The notes under the pieces are model-generated. The model made no database searches, had not been told where the DNA came from, and worked only from the letters and a program-made list of their open reading frames with translations. 64,000 bases of DNA, from sequence record MH460460.1; one strand, given 5' to 3'. Shown here piece after piece: positions 1 to 43,525 of this stretch (position 1 is the stretch's first letter; each line of letters starts with the position of its first letter). A program made the position numbers and the translations under genes.

Positions 1-1
1 A

Positions 2-286
2 TTGATGAAAGTAGAGATTGATCTCGGCAAAGATGCCGAACTAACTCCAAATGCGCAGCGTGCCGAAGACCGCGCTAAAGAACGTCGCCGTCTTAAAGAG
101 TATGGCGATACTCCGGAAGATGAGATCGAACAGAAGGAAAAGGAAAAGGAAGATCAGGCGGAAGAAAAACGCAAAACTGATAATCCACCGCCTCCTGAAA
201 ATCTCGGTCAATATAAACCGGAAACTTACGAAAGTCTGGATCAACAACTTTCCCATACGGACAGACAAATTTCTAAAAATCTGTAA
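2..286 (+). CDS. 3' fragment of a charged hypothetical protein
   Basis: Open from window edge; E/K-rich; stop lies inside a CTGTAAATA motif. Confidence 0.55.
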   Translation: MMKVEIDLGKDAELTPNAQRAEDRAKERRRLKEYGDTPEDEIEQKEKEKEDQAEEKRKTDNPPPPENLGQYKPETYESLDQQLSHTDRQISKNL

Positions 287-36926: not shown

Positions 36927-37217
36927 ATGAGAAAAATCCCGGCTAAATCTAAACGGAAGTCTGTTGAGAAAAATTCTCTTCAACTTTTGAAGGCAGGCAA
37001 AACGTTCTATGTGAGTATTTCTTCTGGCGACAAGAGCGAAGAAATCAAGATGACTAACGATTACAAATACGTTAAGACTTGCATGGTTGCTGTTGCCCAT
37101 ATCTCCGGCAATCCAGAAGTGCGCCTGCATTTAGGCCGCAACCTTATGGATGACACGCCGGATACATACATCTTCGAAATCGAAATTTCGATCAAACGTA
37201 AAAAAGGAAAAAATTAA
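36927..37217 (+). CDS. Basic hypothetical protein
   Basis: Packed ORF. Confidence 0.55.
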   Translation: MRKIPAKSKRKSVEKNSLQLLKAGKTFYVSISSGDKSEEIKMTNDYKYVKTCMVAVAHISGNPEVRLHLGRNLMDDTPDTYIFEIEISIKRKKGKN

Positions 37218-37783
37218 TGGAACAAGTATTCACTCCGGCTCTGGCAGAAATTCATTTCAACATTCTGCCTGATGAAAAGTACAAAGCAAATTTCATCCCG
37301 CCGTCATATGGCACTCCGTTTAGCGCGGCACTGGATGTTTTTGCGCAGGAAGATTTTCATATCACGCATGAAACTCAACTTGTGCCGTTAGGTTTCCGCG
37401 CTGAATTCCCTACTGGTACGGCGTGCATTTTACTTCCGCGTTCTGGTTTCGGTGCGAAGTTCGGCGTTGCTTTGGCAAACACTCTCGGCCTGATCGATCC
37501 TGATTATCGTGGCCCGTGGATGGCGGCGGCATGGTTGAACGGAAGTGGTACGCGCGTTAAAGAAACGCAATTCCCGATCAATGAAGAATTTGAACAGAAC
37601 GGGCAGAAGTACGCACGCGACACTGGCGAAACTGGTCGCCGTCTTTTGATTCCTCGCGGCGAAGCATTTGCTCAATTGCTGTTTGTGAAAACCGAAAGAC
37701 CGCTTCCTATGATTGTCTCAGAATTGTCTGAAACAGTGCGCGGTGAAGGCGGTTTCGGTAGTACCAATAAGATCGCCAAATAA
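37217..37783 (+). CDS. dut: Trimeric dUTPase with insertion
   Basis: SAALD, PRSG, GLIDPDYRG, AQL, RGEGGFGST. Confidence 0.95.
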   Translation: MEQVFTPALAEIHFNILPDEKYKANFIPPSYGTPFSAALDVFAQEDFHITHETQLVPLGFRAEFPTGTACILLPRSGFGAKFGVALANTLGLIDPDYRGPWMAAAWLNGSGTRVKETQFPINEEFEQNGQKYARDTGETGRRLLIPRGEAFAQLLFVKTERPLPMIVSELSETVRGEGGFGSTNKIAK

Positions 37784-37792
37784 TTTTACTGT

Positions 37793-38074
37793 ATGGGTCG
37801 CCACATGAGACGAGACACGCCGCTTAAAAACTTGCGTGCTGTTCTATTGTATCTGGCTCGCAATGAGTACGAGGCGAACGAGAAATTCTTTCGTCTGCAT
37901 TGTGAAAAAGCATTGCGTAAAATGCGCAGTGAAAGATTCTTTCTAGGGCGCTTATATCTCTACAAGATTGGTCGATGGCAAATCCTTTGGATCGATCCAT
38001 ACAACTACGATTGTCTTGTACGTGATAGGAGGGGTATAGCAAAATATAAAAACCTTTACGGTCTGTTATTATGA
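37793..38074 (+). CDS. Basic hypothetical protein
   Basis: Packed ORF. Confidence 0.5.
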   Translation: MGRHMRRDTPLKNLRAVLLYLARNEYEANEKFFRLHCEKALRKMRSERFFLGRLYLYKIGRWQILWIDPYNYDCLVRDRRGIAKYKNLYGLLL

Positions 38075-38112
38075 CGGCCTAGCGCAAAACAACTAGGAGA
38101 AAATAAATTCCA

Positions 38113-38679
38113 ATGAACCTAAAACTTATTGAGGTGATCAAAAGAGGTTCCCTTGCCAGAATGTGCGCGGGACTGATCCTATCTCTAGCAATTCCTTTGA
38201 CTGTAGATGCTTCCGTTTCATCTTCACAGCACATACAAGGAGAAAAACTTTTAAAGACTTCCGTTCAGAAAAAATCTGCTACGAAACGTCTGCAAAAGTT
38301 GTACGCACATTTACCGCAGCCAGAAGATCTCGGTGACGTGTTTGATAGCGCTGCTAAAAAACACGGAATTGATACACGACTTTTGGTTTCGTTATGTGTA
38401 ACTGAATCCCAACTTCGAAAGTCTGTCGTTAATCGCGGTGCAATTGGTATGTGTCAGGTTGTTCCTCGCTACCATTCCACAACGCGAAAAGAAATGATGA
38501 ACTATCGCAAGAATGTGGATAAGGCAGCGGAAATCGTAGCCGACTTGAAAGCTACTTGTCGAAACAATGTTAGGTGCATCGTGCATTCTTACAACGTGGG
38601 CAAAACAGCTTACAAGAAAGGCGCTCGTTCTCCGCAGTATTACGCTAAGGTTATGAAGCAGTACCATCGAGACGTGTAA
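38113..38679 (+). CDS. Lytic transglycosylase (SLT domain) with N-terminal hydrophobic/signal segment
   Basis: AAKKHGID...VTES, GAIGMCQV, SYNVG. Confidence 0.88.
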   Translation: MNLKLIEVIKRGSLARMCAGLILSLAIPLTVDASVSSSQHIQGEKLLKTSVQKKSATKRLQKLYAHLPQPEDLGDVFDSAAKKHGIDTRLLVSLCVTESQLRKSVVNRGAIGMCQVVPRYHSTTRKEMMNYRKNVDKAAEIVADLKATCRNNVRCIVHSYNVGKTAYKKGARSPQYYAKVMKQYHRDV

Positions 38680-38683
38680 CACT

Positions 38684-38720
38684 AAGGGAACCTGTAGGAA
38701 TAACTTATAGGTTCCCTTTC
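38684..38720 (+). terminator. Terminator after transglycosylase
   Basis: AAGGGAACCT...AGGTTCCCTT long stem. Confidence 0.65.
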
Positions 38721-38726
38721 GTTTAT

Positions 38727-38783
38727 CTCTGCAAATTTGTGTCCAAAATAATGCTTGTTTCTGCCGCTTCGTTAGTTTAAGAT
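38727..38783 (+). promoter_or_regulatory. Class-E promoter
   Basis: CTCTGCAAA, TGTCCAAAAT at 38740; TAAGAT at 38778. Confidence 0.75.
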
Positions 38784-38825
38784 AAGGGCAGGGCGCAGTA
38801 TACACACATTTGCATAGGTAAACTT

Positions 38826-39119
38826 ATGAACAAGCTAAGGACTCAAGCGCAAGCGCGTAAACTCTGGTTAGACTTCATCGCGTTTAAACTCGAACTCGAC
38901 CGCGTTAAAAGACCTAACGCAGCCATTACAGAAATGTCCGACAAGATTTGCGCAATGTATCGCGCAATCTCGTCAGAGAAATACAAAACTGCTTTAAAAC
39001 TCGGTGAGGAAGTTTTAGCAGTTAGTATCCAGTACAAAGCGCGTTATGAAAAAGACGCACTTCAATTTTTAAAACTTTGCAATCTCGCGGGAGAAGTTGT
39101 ACGCGGTCTTAAAAAATAA
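38826..39119 (+). CDS. Hypothetical helical protein
   Basis: First gene after class-E promoter. Confidence 0.6.
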   Translation: MNKLRTQAQARKLWLDFIAFKLELDRVKRPNAAITEMSDKICAMYRAISSEKYKTALKLGEEVLAVSIQYKARYEKDALQFLKLCNLAGEVVRGLKK

Positions 39120-39134
39120 ATGAGGAATTAGATT

Positions 39135-39647
39135 ATGAACGTAAATGCTTTACTTGATTTCCAAAACGAACTGTTAAAGCCTTTCGCTCCGTCTCAGGAA
39201 TTCGCATTGATAACTCTCATCGTTCCACACACGGACGAAGAAACTGTCGTTGATTACTGTACTGAAATTCAGTACCGCTTTCCGCATGTTGCTTCGCTGT
39301 ACGATGCCTATGCAATTAAGCGCCCCGAAAATGCGATTCCTCTCATTGTTCCTGTCGCCGACAAAACAAACGTGCGTGAAGAACTGTTTGAATTGAAAGC
39401 TGGCTCTGTTGGCTTGAGCGAAGATTTTTATCTTCTCCTTTCCACGTATGTTTCTCGCGTGCCGGAACACGTAAGCTCTCCTGATGAACTGCACTTAGGT
39501 GCAAGTGATCGAATTGCGAGATTAACGCTGGATGATTTATCCGCTGCTATCATGCACGGTTTTTATTCTGGCGTACCGCCTATTGTTGGCGAAACGAAAC
39601 GAAAAAGCGCTGGTTTCTGGCGCACACTTTTTCCATCTGCTGCATAA
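39135..39647 (+). CDS. Hypothetical protein (possible paralogue of 40553..41077)
   Basis: GAGG SD. Confidence 0.65.
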   Translation: MNVNALLDFQNELLKPFAPSQEFALITLIVPHTDEETVVDYCTEIQYRFPHVASLYDAYAIKRPENAIPLIVPVADKTNVREELFELKAGSVGLSEDFYLLLSTYVSRVPEHVSSPDELHLGASDRIARLTLDDLSAAIMHGFYSGVPPIVGETKRKSAGFWRTLFPSAA

Positions 39648-39653
39648 GGAGAA

Positions 39654-39803
39654 ATGATCATGTCAGAGCGGGAAGAGTTTGAAATTTGGTTCGCACGAGA
39701 AAAAGCGCCGAAGATTGATCCGTCGCAGATATTTCTTATGCGAGAAATAATGTGGGAAGGCTGGCAAGGGAAAGCCAGCAATCTCGATCCAGATAAAAAG
39801 TGA
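39654..39803 (+). CDS. 49-aa phage microprotein (not in supplied ORF track)
   Basis: AAGGAG SD; EREEFEIWF...MWEGWQGKA. Confidence 0.55.
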   Translation: MIMSEREEFEIWFAREKAPKIDPSQIFLMREIMWEGWQGKASNLDPDKK

Positions 39804-39845
39804 TCGATGGTGAGCAAAATTCTGTCTCGCCGTTAGGAGAATAAA

Positions 39846-40553
39846 ATGGAACTGCTAACCGGTATTGAGTTTGAAGCTCGTTTAAAAAGTTTAACTGATC
39901 AGTACAATCTCGTTGAGTATCACGAATGGATTCAGAAAAACAATTCTGTTCGTGGCACTGCATTCTATCATTCGAACCTGCACATGGATGGCGTTGCGAT
40001 GTTGTGTATGGATCTTCTTCCCGAAGAAGCGCATGATGATCGCGATGCAGTTTTTTGTTTGCTCGCCGCTGCTTTGATTCACGATATGGATCATACGCTC
40101 GGTGAATATAGCGATAACGTTAATATCCAAAATGCAATTGCGGCACTCAGAGATTGGACGTGGGCTTCTCCTGCCGATTCCGATTTCAAACGTCTGTTAC
40201 CTGAAATCGAAAAGCTGATTCATATTACGGAATTTCCGTATACGCCGGATCGTGAACCTCAAACGGTTTATGAAAAAGTTCTGCGTGACTCCGATATCTT
40301 GTGGGGAATTTTGCCCGGTCGCGCCGTAACGATTGTGGAAGGGTTACGAACTGAATTGCTGCATTCGTTCCCGCAATATACAAGCGACGGCTTTCGCTTA
40401 GTCAACTTCATTTATGATCGAATCGACTTCCTTCGTTCGCTGAATTGGGCGACGGAAAAAGGAAAGAAACTTTTTGATCGTTTTATCATTCAACATAAAC
40501 TGGAAATGTTGGATTACATTAACTCAGTTAAATCATACGAGGACAGAAAATAA
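39846..40553 (+). CDS. HD-domain phosphohydrolase (class I cyclic-nucleotide PDE-like signature)
   Basis: FYHSNLH, AAALIHDMDH, LRDSDIL. Confidence 0.8.
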   Translation: MELLTGIEFEARLKSLTDQYNLVEYHEWIQKNNSVRGTAFYHSNLHMDGVAMLCMDLLPEEAHDDRDAVFCLLAAALIHDMDHTLGEYSDNVNIQNAIAALRDWTWASPADSDFKRLLPEIEKLIHITEFPYTPDREPQTVYEKVLRDSDILWGILPGRAVTIVEGLRTELLHSFPQYTSDGFRLVNFIYDRIDFLRSLNWATEKGKKLFDRFIIQHKLEMLDYINSVKSYEDRK

Positions 40554-41077
40554 TGTTCCCCATCACCAATGTAGTTGAGATTGTAGATCTTGCCGCAATT
40601 CAAAACAAACTTTGCGATGTAGCAATTCAGCGCGGAATGTTACCGCACCGAAAATCAAAATACAGCGTGTTCTTTATCCCGGTTCATCGTTCCTCAAATG
40701 AGAACGAAGTATTGGATGTGTACACTCAGGCGCTGGATCGCTTCTCGCTCAAACTGGTTACTTCAATTGCGAAATACAAGAAGCATTTTCTCCCGCTCGT
40801 TGTGCCGATTGCATATTCAGAAGATCCGTTCTTCATCCATTTGGACGGAGACGTGGTGAAGATTGAAATGCAACCATACTACAGCGAGTTAATTGGTGGT
40901 GCGGCTAACAGTAACCTCGTCTCTAAATCCCTTGTTGGTGCAATCGTGGCTAGTCATCACCGATATGATATTCCTGTCGATGAGTTTGATGGTTACTTGG
41001 AAGGAAATTTCCTACACACGATTCGCGCCAGCTTGAACCGAATAAGTTGGCCTAGAGCGGCTAAGGAGTCCAAATGA
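40553..41077 (+). CDS. Hypothetical protein
   Basis: TAATG coupling. Confidence 0.65.
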   Translation: MFPITNVVEIVDLAAIQNKLCDVAIQRGMLPHRKSKYSVFFIPVHRSSNENEVLDVYTQALDRFSLKLVTSIAKYKKHFLPLVVPIAYSEDPFFIHLDGDVVKIEMQPYYSELIGGAANSNLVSKSLVGAIVASHHRYDIPVDEFDGYLEGNFLHTIRASLNRISWPRAAKESK

Positions 41078-41529
41078 TTTACGATCCTAAAAACGGATTG
41101 TTAAATGTGGGTGACGTTGAAATGCGCACTCGTCCTGTTTTGTTTCAGCACAAACTCTGGCAGAACATGGAAGAGTATTTCAAGCAGGCTGAACACAATT
41201 TTGTTGACCGCTACAACGCGCTGAATGGAACCTCGCGTTCTGTTCTGCCTATCTCTTTCGTGTACGTTATTTCGAAAGGCGGTCATCGCGTTCGTACTTC
41301 AACGCTACTGGAAAAGTTTGGCTACGATGGCGATAAATTTAATCCAGTAGATCCGGATTACAAGTTTCTGCTTGGTGAGTTATTTTCTCGCTACACAAAA
41401 ATTCCGGCTGAACAGTGTTTTGTTCAAAGTTTCAAACTGCCTGAAAGTCGGCTGTTACTTGAAACAATCAATTTTCTCATCCTGCCTTGCGAAGATTTCT
41501 TCGTCGGCATTGTTAGCTTAGAGGGTTAA
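41074..41529 (+). CDS. Hypothetical protein
   Basis: AAGGAG SD. Confidence 0.65.
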   Translation: MIYDPKNGLLNVGDVEMRTRPVLFQHKLWQNMEEYFKQAEHNFVDRYNALNGTSRSVLPISFVYVISKGGHRVRTSTLLEKFGYDGDKFNPVDPDYKFLLGELFSRYTKIPAEQCFVQSFKLPESRLLLETINFLILPCEDFFVGIVSLEG

Positions 41530-41736
41530 ATGGAAACGATCTCTATTCGTGTAAAGCGTGCGGAAGTTCTTGTTGGGAATGGCGTTGATAAAGTATTGCT
41601 GGTTACTGAACTTCCGCTCGGTGTTGCTCCCTTCAACGATGAAGGGCAGACACTTGAATTTAAAGTTGCTGCTGGCAAGGGCGTTCTTTATGTCCAGAAG
41701 CATTTCAATCTGAATCCAAAAGTCACAAGGGTATAA
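41530..41736 (+). CDS. Small hypothetical protein
   Basis: GAGG SD. Confidence 0.55.
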   Translation: METISIRVKRAEVLVGNGVDKVLLVTELPLGVAPFNDEGQTLEFKVAAGKGVLYVQKHFNLNPKVTRV

Positions 41737-41742
41737 GCGATC

Positions 41743-42147
41743 ATGAGTAAGAATAAATCAGTTTATGATGTTCTTCTGCAACGCACACTTTCAAGCCTGT
41801 TGAATCTTAGTCAGGCTGACACGGCTACGAAGGTTTCTATCACCGTCGCCGGAAACGCGTATAAGTTTTCTCTGCCTTTTGAAAAAGAAAAAGTGCTTCG
41901 CGTTGTTGTGCGCGTAAGCGATAAAGGCAATCTGAAAATCAAAGCAACGTTAGACAAACCTGTTAAACGTTTTATCTCTGGCCTCGTTGCGATTGCTAAA
42001 GATAATATGGTTTCTTCTAACGATGGTCTACGCGACTTCACCAAAGTAAAAGACAAACTTTGGAAAGCGTATGTGAAGAAAGCCGAAGCTGAATTGCGTA
42101 GCAAGATTATTCGTTCAGCGCTGGCTTCCTACCAGTGGACAAAATAA
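41743..42147 (+). CDS. Basic hypothetical protein
   Basis: Followed by terminator. Confidence 0.6.
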   Translation: MSKNKSVYDVLLQRTLSSLLNLSQADTATKVSITVAGNAYKFSLPFEKEKVLRVVVRVSDKGNLKIKATLDKPVKRFISGLVAIAKDNMVSSNDGLRDFTKVKDKLWKAYVKKAEAELRSKIIRSALASYQWTK

Positions 42148-42148
42148 C

Positions 42149-42170
42149 GCGCTCCTGTTGGGGCGCTTTT
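42149..42170 (+). terminator. Rho-independent terminator
   Basis: GCGCTCC-TGTT-GGGGCGC-TTTT. Confidence 0.65.
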
Positions 42171-42919: not shown

Positions 42920-43525
42920 ATGTTCGCAATCAAAACCGTAACCGACCTGAACAACCTGATCGAACTGCAAGACGCTGTACTGTCCGAAGTGTTGGGGAAA
43001 TCTTCCGATATGCGTTTGAACAAATACCAATGGAATTTGGATTTGTACAAACATAAATGGACGATGATTAAAGTTCCGGTTGAGGTTTACGGTTTTCATG
43101 ATGTTGAAGAAACAAATATGCGTTTGCATTTTGTTCGTCATTATCTGAAAAACTCACATTCGTTTTTGAAGAGTATTGTTTCGCCTCGCCGTGTTTCATT
43201 ATCTGGAAAATGGATTCCGTTTTTCATGCCGGGAGGTTTTGATTTTAGCAATGCCGTTCGATTGACGAACGACAACGAAAATATTTTGTCGGGCGTTTCC
43301 CCTGCGGGTCGTGCATTTCTCGAATGCAGTATCAATCCTCTTTTTCGTACAGAGTGGATGCTGGAAGATATCGTGAGCGCAATCGTGTGGGCGAAAGTTC
43401 AATACAACTTAACGCCTGAAACTTTTAATGTGGATGTGTTTAGCGCATCACATGCAATTCTTCATTACGTGCGCAAAGTCCTCTGGTCTTTCGCCAATCC
43501 AAAGTTTAAAAAGGCACACGCATGA
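42920..43525 (+). CDS. Hypothetical protein
   Basis: AAGGAG SD; first gene after class-E promoter. Confidence 0.7.
   Translation: MFAIKTVTDLNNLIELQDAVLSEVLGKSSDMRLNKYQWNLDLYKHKWTMIKVPVEVYGFHDVEETNMRLHFVRHYLKNSHSFLKSIVSPRRVSLSGKWIPFFMPGGFDFSNAVRLTNDNENILSGVSPAGRAFLECSINPLFRTEWMLEDIVSAIVWAKVQYNLTPETFNVDVFSASHAILHYVRKVLWSFANPKFKKAHA

Follow-up and report, generated by a model that had tools for sequence, protein, structure and literature searches.

A compact HD protein of a Dickeya jumbo phage, related to class I cyclic-nucleotide phosphodiesterases, as a candidate eraser of host cyclic-mononucleotide signals

The established phage enzymes that destroy cyclic-nucleotide immune signals belong to two folds, the 2H fold of Acb1 and its relatives and the metallo-β-lactamase fold of Apyc1 (PMC9117128; PMC13728456). 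Whether a protein of the HD fold might do a similar job is the question raised by one gene (the HD gene) in a 64,000-nucleotide stretch of sequence record MH460460.1, called the window throughout, of which positions 39000-41500 correspond to record positions 225000-227500 with 100% identity. The record is the 254-kb genome of Dickeya phage vB_DsoM_JA13, a jumbo myovirus (genus Salmondvirus) whose host is Dickeya solani, a pathogen of potato. A first-pass annotation, made from the letters alone, had seen in the HD protein a signature like that of class I cyclic-nucleotide phosphodiesterases (PDEs) and had proposed a degrader of the signals of Pycsar (a pyrimidine cyclase system that confers resistance to phages) or of CBASS (antiphage signalling based on cyclic oligonucleotides), or an enzyme acting on cyclic AMP (cAMP) or the alarmone (p)ppGpp; its coordinates for the open reading frame proved exact (Table 1). 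We find that the nearest known relatives of the HD protein, by sequence profile and predicted fold, are class I PDEs, and the best reading, held with somewhat less than even confidence, is that it would act as a miniature class I PDE-like enzyme that erases a host cyclic-mononucleotide signal.

Taken as a single sequence, the protein gives a resemblance to PDEs that is suggestive only. Its matches to the Pfam families PDEase_I (PF00233; E 0.056, 13.6-13.7 bits, profile positions 1-47 of 238) and HD (E 0.059, 14.1 bits) both lie over the N-terminal motifs, and its best PDB sequence match with phmmer, a phosphodiesterase, is not significant (E 0.58). NCBIfam and PADLOC returned no match to the query alone, and a word-based homologue search with the single protein, together with a scan of viral contigs, returned close relatives only, while PHROG 16069, labelled "phosphohydrolase", matched at E 1.2e-40 with residues 11-230 on profile positions 17-242 of 245. 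When 1.84 billion cluster representatives were searched exhaustively with a profile, 782 relatives emerged at E<=1e-3, 204 of them at E<=1e-10, nearly all 200-260 residues long and mostly from jumbo phages. Named members come from Yersinia phage fHe-Yen9-02, many Erwinia phages, the Pseudomonas phages PaBG and Noxifer, Aeromonas phage ACP1, Klebsiella phages, Ralstonia phage phiRSL1 and the Lak megaphages, and ESM Atlas clusters of the family are 60-100% viral.

An alignment of 122 diverse relatives (A2), whose members outside the query's own clade share 21-33% identity with it, took the kinship far beyond chance; a 10-sequence subset (A3) served to locate related loci. Searched against all PDB sequences, the A2 profile gave 60 listed matches, every one a class I PDE, with PDE10A best at E 2.8e-11 and PDE5 and PDE9 next, aligned over the block from YHNxxH to HDxxH. 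Among the A2 members themselves, 67 of 122 match PDEase_I at E<0.01 (the best relative at E 2.8e-8) and 64 match HD, so that the class I PDE-like signature first read from one sequence is borne out by the family.

Predicted structure agrees with the profile. The AlphaFold2 model, for which A2 was the input alignment, is confident (mean predicted local distance difference test score 95, predicted template-modelling (TM) score 0.92) and shows 12 helices in an all-helical HD fold; in an exhaustive structural comparison its best match was PDE9A, with Z 16.8 and 231 of 235 residues aligned. The matches ranked 1-15 are all class I PDEs, among them PDE9A, Leishmania PDEB1, PDE8A, RhoPDE, PDE2A, PDE5, TcrPDEC1, PDE7A, PDE3A, PDE1B and PDE4, and they align colinearly over 214-232 of the 235 residues at Z 14.8-16.8 and a root-mean-square deviation of 3.7-4.9, in keeping with the class I PDE resemblance of the sequence. 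Foldseek, with PDEs at E ~1e-3 and TM by query 0.55-0.62, and the ESM Atlas, where eukaryotic PDEs reach TM 0.73-0.75, agree with the profile and the fold, and because these four lines concur we regard the resemblance as real and specific.

The predicted catalytic set is intact and unchanged throughout the family. In A2, H42, H46, H79, D80, D90, T128, R147, D148, D150 and E170 are invariant (122/122), and Y41, A75, H83, G86, N93, A97, I125, P131, L167, F195 and T203 are nearly so, Y41 and H83 each being present in 121 members; the consensus reads PYHNxxH ... AALFHDxxHSGGxxxDxxNI ... IxxTEFPF ... RDADLL ... GLRxE ... QxxF. The H...HD...D pattern of the HD superfamily (H46, H79-D80, D148/D150) thus occurs in all 122, the fold matches many HD proteins, and the protein belongs to this superfamily of metal-dependent phosphohydrolases. 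The earlier proposal of a YHN...AA..HD.DH pattern was right in its main part, YHSNLH and AAALIHDMDH being present and aligned residue for residue with the YHxxH and HDxxH motifs of class I PDEs (HDMDH in the query); the query departs from the PDE pattern in that serine replaces the asparagine, arginine stands at the glutamine-switch position and the PROSITE pattern is not matched. On this alignment H42 would serve as general acid and H46 as first metal ligand, H79 and D80 are predicted further ligands, and H83 would be a third histidine.

Class I PDEs further carry a conserved ATD turn, a fourth metal-binding aspartate and, in the penultimate helix, an invariant glutamine switch with a phenylalanine clamp. 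The colinear, whole-length fold alignment would place the counterpart of the ATD turn at the IxxT[E/D] turn of the family, that of the fourth metal ligand at D150 (or D148), and further PDE counterparts at E170 and R192/F195. The family conserves a Q-x-x-F pair with PDE-like spacing, in which the query has arginine at position 192. In the clade of Dickeya, Yersinia and Erwinia phages this R192 covaries with serine or threonine at position 43, the asparagine of YHN, and with L85 in place of a conserved glycine. The protein also differs from class I PDEs in size, for their catalytic domains have ~300-340 residues and 16 helices, 70-90 residues more than its 235, and in being phage-borne and free of regulatory domains. 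It is not a formal member of PDEase_I. A full-length PDEase_I sequence was sought in the genome of JA11, a near-identical sister phage of JA13, in 14 genomes serving as controls and in 301 genomes of Bacteroidota, and none was found.

Other HD families followed the class I PDEs in the structural ranking: 2pq7 (Z 14.8, 171 residues), YedJ (3gw7; Z 12.4), YpgQ (5dqv; Z 11.8), an alarmone hydrolase (11.1), SAMHD1 (10.7) and the SidE PDE domain (10.6). The first three, of similar size (~175-215 residues) and with an HD metal site, are respectable fold matches, and the present annotation is no more specific than "phosphohydrolase", which would suit a nucleotide-pool enzyme such as YpgQ, YedJ or YfbR, whether a phosphatase acting on dNMP/NMP or a pyrophosphohydrolase acting on (d)NTP, that would serve phage DNA synthesis together with the dUTPase encoded nearby. 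Gene order suits such metabolism equally well and in this weighs against signal erasure: a block in which a dUTPase gene is followed by a small gene, an SLT lytic transglycosylase gene, phrog_28242 and the HD gene is common to Salmondvirus and Yoloswagvirus (Erwinia phage Yoloswag), and in phage PaBG the HD gene lies near a dCTP deaminase and a NUDIX gene. Yet the doubled-histidine YHxxH with its general-acid histidine is a phosphodiesterase feature common to PDEs; class I PDEs align over 214-232 residues as against 171-184 for 2pq7, YedJ and YpgQ, which are not the closest sequence relatives either, being absent among the 60 PDB profile matches listed; a YfbR-like match occurs in one of the 122 members; a terminator-like hairpin splits the dUTPase and SLT genes from the HD unit; and a role in the nucleotide pool leaves the cyclase linkage of the sister clade described below unexplained. 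We therefore consider it improbable that the HD protein is a nucleotide-pool enzyme.

The earlier suggestion of (p)ppGpp as substrate has lost ground. The model has Mesh1, SpoT and small alarmone hydrolases among its neighbours of the HD fold (Z 9-11), which is what speaks for a hydrolase of (p)ppGpp or another alarmone; however, the motif is HDMDHT instead of the HDxxED of RelA/SpoT-type hydrolases, the query has no HD_4 match, JA13 encodes a separate HD_4 protein, and one relative (P0029) carries an HD_4 alarmone-hydrolase domain and a query-type HD in one polypeptide, implying different jobs for the two. Activity on alarmones is accordingly the least probable of the alternatives, with hardly any chance of being right, and on motif and profile a RelA/SpoT-type (p)ppGpp hydrolase was rejected. 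Two further identities were rejected: an HD-GYP cyclic-dinucleotide PDE, as the protein has no HHExxDGxGYP motif (neither GYP nor HHE) and no such Pfam match, and Apyc1, as the fold is all-helical HD and not metallo-β-lactamase.

The strongest pointer to a signalling nucleotide comes from cellular homologues. Relatives matching the A2 profile over nearly the whole domain occur in 102 of 301 sampled Bacteroidota genomes, and their homology to the query family is high (hhalign probability 97.5-98.2%; hidden Markov model (HMM) E 1e-12 to 1e-30). Sixty such loci (L067-L126) were scanned with three kinds of HMM: that of A2, and others built by us to detect PycTM and the domain of class III cyclases. 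Fifteen HD-PycTM fusions were found, and three loci have HD and PycTM as neighbouring genes; PycTM identity was confirmed on three examples with Pfam PF18967 (E 1e-37) and the PADLOC PycTM models. Cyclase and HD are fused in three polypeptides (466, 529 and 573 aa), five HD-X proteins of ~495 aa each adjoin a cyclase gene (encoding ~350 aa in four cases), stand-alone HD genes abut cyclases of 655-690 aa, and one locus is a cyclase-PycTM-HD cluster. At least 10 HD genes abut a cyclase gene or lie within ~1 kb of one. A cyclase is encoded within 5 kb at 18 of the 49 loci that are not of the ~400-aa fused (HD-PycTM) type, against 0.36 expected from the density of cyclases in the same genomes (binomial 3e-26), a figure to be read with the phylogenetic non-independence of the loci in mind, although they show at least five arrangements. 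PADLOC PycC models match eight of the nine cyclases tested (E 4e-25 to 4e-5), the models also recognising ordinary class III cyclases. No cyclases were present among the neighbours of the first two HD-PycTM genes examined, and cyclases of ~435 aa, considered as HD fusions, were rejected as such.

These cellular HD domains are homologous to the phage family over the whole domain and keep its core residues H42, H46, H79, D80, T128, D148, D150, E170 and F195, with glutamine or asparagine at 192; they differ in that they belong to multi-domain proteins or operons of cells, the phage protein being a free-standing enzyme. From their gene content the HD/cyclase/PycTM modules look like undescribed Pycsar-like systems, in which the role of the HD domain may be that of a sensor, a timer or an off-switch, and they suggest that Bacteroidota hold many unstudied systems built on cyclases. 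One member of this sister clade exceeds the cut-off of the Pfam family HD-CE (PF24391). Two observations concern the modules themselves. The C-terminal ~290 residues of HD-X have no PADLOC match, and the N-terminal ~140 residues of two ~350-aa HD-linked cyclases, L067:5581-6627(-) and L077:596-1663(+), faintly match PADLOC SduA (Shedu, DUF4263) at E 7e-4 and 2.6e-4.

Within the phages, the HD gene keeps the company of other enzymes that act on signals. JA13 encodes an Acb1 homologue, annotated "putative cyclic phosphodiesterase" or "RNA ligase", whose gene ends 21 nt into the window (window 1-21), and Yoloswag, PaBG, ACP1 and a relative from IMG/VR have Acb1 homologues too. The JA11 genome holds no metallo-β-lactamase or Apyc1 match (PF23023, PF12706, PF00753), and among five further carrier phages Acb1 was found in four and a metallo-β-lactamase or Apyc1 match in none. 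Acb1 without Apyc1 is compatible with an HD enzyme handling cyclic mononucleotides. Three relatives, all on jumbo-phage contigs, join a query-type HD to a second domain, HD_4 in P0029, DUF4326 in P0034 and a YunG-like domain in P0076, and are candidate polyvalent counter-signal proteins; DUF4326 is tied to NAD/ADP-ribose conflict systems in the survey by Iyer et al. 2021 (PMC7824862).

The DUF4326 fusion also bears on another possibility, that the HD protein degrades a different messenger, such as the cyclic di- or oligonucleotides of CBASS and type III CRISPR, 2',3'-cyclic nucleotides, or the ADP-ribose-derived signals of Thoeris-type systems. Some ~70-90 residues of the PDE catalytic domain are missing, and the shortened scaffold may open the pocket; an arginine where the base sits might hold a second phosphate; and the SidE-type PDE domains, structural neighbours at Z 10.6, cut ADP-ribose phosphodiesters. 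Against this stand the Acb1 homologue for cyclic oligonucleotides already present in JA13 and in most of the other carrier phages, and the sister clade, whose links are with class III mononucleotide cyclases and not with CD-NTases (cGAS/DncV-like nucleotidyltransferases). We give such a messenger only a small chance. Of the immune-signal degrader first proposed, then, the cyclic-nucleotide part gains from the kinship of the phage family to HDs linked to PycC-like cyclases and PycTM, and the CBASS part is weakened because JA13 already has an Acb1 homologue; CBASS and ppGpp are the less likely targets.

Putting sequence and model together, the gene product is very probably active, a metal-dependent phosphodiesterase of the HD fold. 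Its most likely substrate, with chances that we put at even or slightly above, is a 3',5'-cyclic mononucleotide, because the histidine is doubled, the fold is of the PDE type and the sister clade is linked to cyclases. In the mechanism that we envisage, H46, H79, D80 and D150 would hold a metal pair, a metal-bound hydroxide would attack the phosphorus and H42 would protonate the leaving 3' oxygen, opening the 3',5'-cyclic mononucleotide to a 5'-monophosphate, while F195 with L167/I163 would clamp the base and residue 192 would read it. During infection the enzyme would erase a host cyclic-mononucleotide signal, of which a Pycsar-type immune signal (cyclic CMP or cyclic UMP (cCMP/cUMP), or related) would be the most likely target, and it would complement the phage's Acb1-type enzyme for cyclic oligonucleotides. 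What favours a Pycsar-like target is the connection to PycTM and PycC, the fusions seen in phage relatives, and the finding of Acb1 but not of Apyc1; this anti-Pycsar-like role is plausible, its chances ranging from low to just short of even.

Several observations weigh against this reading. The query lies below the gathering cut-offs of both PDEase_I (24.8 bits) and HD (22 bits), most of its relatives likewise fall short of the PDEase_I cut-off, and the PDEase_I matches of its relatives span, where their extent is shown, profile positions 1-70 of 238 at most. The PROSITE pattern PS00126, HD[LIVMFY]xHx[AG]xx[NQ]x[LIVMFY], matches one of the 122 A2 members and not the query, because an insertion of 4-5 residues with an invariant aspartate lengthens the spacing from histidine to asparagine. 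In the query's clade the base-reading glutamine is replaced by arginine, and base specificity is for that reason not transferable from PDEs. The cyclase and PycTM linkage belongs to the sister clade, which has tyrosine or phenylalanine instead of H83 and cysteine or alanine instead of R147 and whose 60 sequences group together in the tree, separate from the phage family and from its stand-alone relatives in cells (FastTree, support 0.978). No cyclase or PycTM was found near the phage members or near the closest cellular relatives, which are stand-alone genes in a Bacteroidales genome, in candidate-phyla-radiation (CPR) genomes and in a 2.25-Mb chromosome, and these relatives lie beside ordinary genes (trpD/trpC, a penicillin-binding protein, endonuclease III). 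The absence of Apyc1, lastly, is weak evidence, because the carrier phages are related and Apyc1 is uncommon.

Such housekeeping neighbourhoods, outside defence islands, speak for another reading, in which the same 3',5'-cyclic mononucleotide chemistry would serve to reset ordinary host signalling, most likely cAMP and the CRP regulon (or cyclic GMP (cGMP)), so as to reprogramme metabolism or receptor expression. The nearest known enzymes are cAMP/cGMP phosphodiesterases, and among the linked cyclases of Bacteroidota there are many large proteins of several domains that contain tetratricopeptide repeats, as is typical of ordinary signalling. The fusion of phage relatives to counter-defence-type domains and of the sister clade to the PycTM effector module argue otherwise, and the glutamine-to-arginine change of the clade speaks against a plain purine reading, so that ordinary host signalling seems to us a rather unlikely target. 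Erasure of an immune cyclic-mononucleotide signal shares its proposed job with Apyc1 (anti-Pycsar, metallo-β-lactamase) and Acb1 (anti-CBASS, 2H) (Hobbs et al. 2022, PMC9117128), although the folds are unrelated and Acb1 is a separate gene in JA13. It is also reminiscent, as an analogy of strategy only, of AcrIII-1 and the ring nucleases, free-standing viral versions of a signal-degrading domain that cells use in their own signalling, which have another fold, a cyclic oligoadenylate substrate and no homology to the HD protein.

The protein itself is not new, because the gene is annotated (the JA11 orthologue, gp287, is "phosphohydrolase" in RefSeq and hypothetical in GenBank) and the family carries a generic HD label. 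The papers on the JA phages and PaBG do not discuss the gene. A review of November 2026 lists phage PDEs of the Acb1, Apyc1 and 2H types only (PMC13728456), and the available part of the jumbo-phage survey by Iyer et al. (PMC7824862) names HD-GYP, HD-alarmone, DHH, calcineurin-like and 2H phosphodiesterases and no PDE-type HD. Our literature search returned nothing relevant on PDEase_I in phages, on phage cAMP phosphodiesterase, on PycTM with an HD domain, on DUF5706 or on HD-CE, and in the literature searched we found no description of a compact, phage-dominated class-I-PDE-like clade, of its arginine-variant subclade or of its kinship to cyclase- and PycTM-linked HDs. The most far-reaching version of our proposal would make the protein the first counter-defence enzyme of phages to have an HD (class-I-PDE-like) fold, a stand-alone representative of the domain lineage found in Bacteroidota as cyclase-HD, HD-PycTM and cyclase + HD-X, hydrolysing cyclic-mononucleotide immune signals for jumbo phages and retuned, for example towards pyrimidine cyclic mononucleotides, by the glutamine-to-arginine change in the Dickeya/Erwinia/Yersinia clade; in so full a form it is unlikely to hold. 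If true, it would widen the phage counter-defence repertoire by a third, HD/PDE-type family. The class I PDE fold is of medical importance, and the protein would also offer a compact model of it from a bacterial virus; as a plain nucleotide-pool enzyme the protein would be an ordinary finding.

In the window two terminator-like hairpins enclose eight small genes on one strand (38826-42147), and the HD gene is one of these. Its stop codon and the start codon of the gene that follows overlap (TAATG), which suggests translational coupling of the two (Table 1). No alternative genetic code had to be assumed.

Table 1. Features of the HD gene, its product and related loci (window positions unless a record or contig is named).
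Feature	Position	Strand	Basis
HD gene, 235 aa, predicted PDE-like HD phosphodiesterase	39846..40553	+	ORF; PHROG 16069; AlphaFold2 model
Ribosome-binding site AGGAG, 6 nt 5' of ATG	39835..39839	+	sequence read
Y41-H42-S43-N44-L45-H46, counterpart of class I PDE YHNxxH (S replaces N)	39966..39983	+	aligned to PDE sequences
A74-AALIHDMD-H83, HDxxH motif	40065..40094	+	aligned to HDxDH of PDEs
D90-N-V-N93, family-specific, after 4-5 residue insertion relative to PDE signature	40113..40124	+	D90 122/122, N93 120/122
I125-HITEFP-Y132, IxxT[E/D] motif	40218..40241	+	T128 122/122 in family, 60/60 in sister clade
R147-D148-S-D150	40284..40295	+	R147, D148, D150 122/122; D148 and D150 60/60 in sister clade
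L167-R-T-E170, conserved GLRxE helix	40344..40355	+	E170 122/122 and 60/60 in sister clade; L167 119/122
R192-I-D-F195, spacing as in class I PDE glutamine switch and phenylalanine clamp	40419..40430	+	F195 120/122; residue 192 Q 85, N 15, R 10 of 122
Downstream gene, 174 aa, function unassigned	40553..41077	+	start overlaps HD gene stop
Terminator-like hairpin, likely upstream limit of HD transcription unit	38684..38718	+	15-bp stem, T-rich tail
Terminator-like hairpin, likely downstream limit of HD transcription unit	42149..42166	+	7-bp GC-rich stem, then TTTT
Conserved dUTPase-to-HD block	37217-40553; L007 2578-5747		synteny
SLT - small gene - HD order	L011 3881-5969		distant contig with phiKZ-type capsid gene
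Acb1 homologue, 149-aa 2H phosphoesterase	MH460460.1 185572-186021 (JA11 copy L036:1348-1797)		Pfam Acb1 51 bits, E 1.7e-13
Second HD protein, 194 aa, HD_4 (RelA/SpoT-type alarmone hydrolase-like)	MH460460.1 36195-36779 (JA11 copy L037:1393-1977), outside window		E 1.4e-17
Relative P0029, HD_4 and query-type HD	L010:5001-6200		
Relative P0034, DUF4326 and query-type HD	L011:5001-5969		
Example sister-clade loci	L072:4038-5624(+), L070:5010-6728(-), L069:4188-5585(+), L076:3042-5590(+), L106:2172-5543(+)		HD/cyclase/PycTM modules

The product of the 174-aa gene that follows has no Pfam or PHROG match, and the gene is kept solely in close relatives. Around the HD gene, the genes at 39135-39647, 40553-41077 and 42920-43525 (+), functions unassigned, look weakly paralogous: hhalign of small alignments gave E 1.4e-4 (52% probability) for the 40553 against the 42920 gene and E 3e-3 for the 39135 against the 40553 gene. 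The 39135 gene is phrog_28242, which has the same place directly upstream of the HD gene in phage Yoloswag, and ESM features of the 40553 product hint at Imm44-like proteins (score 0.81), a lead only.

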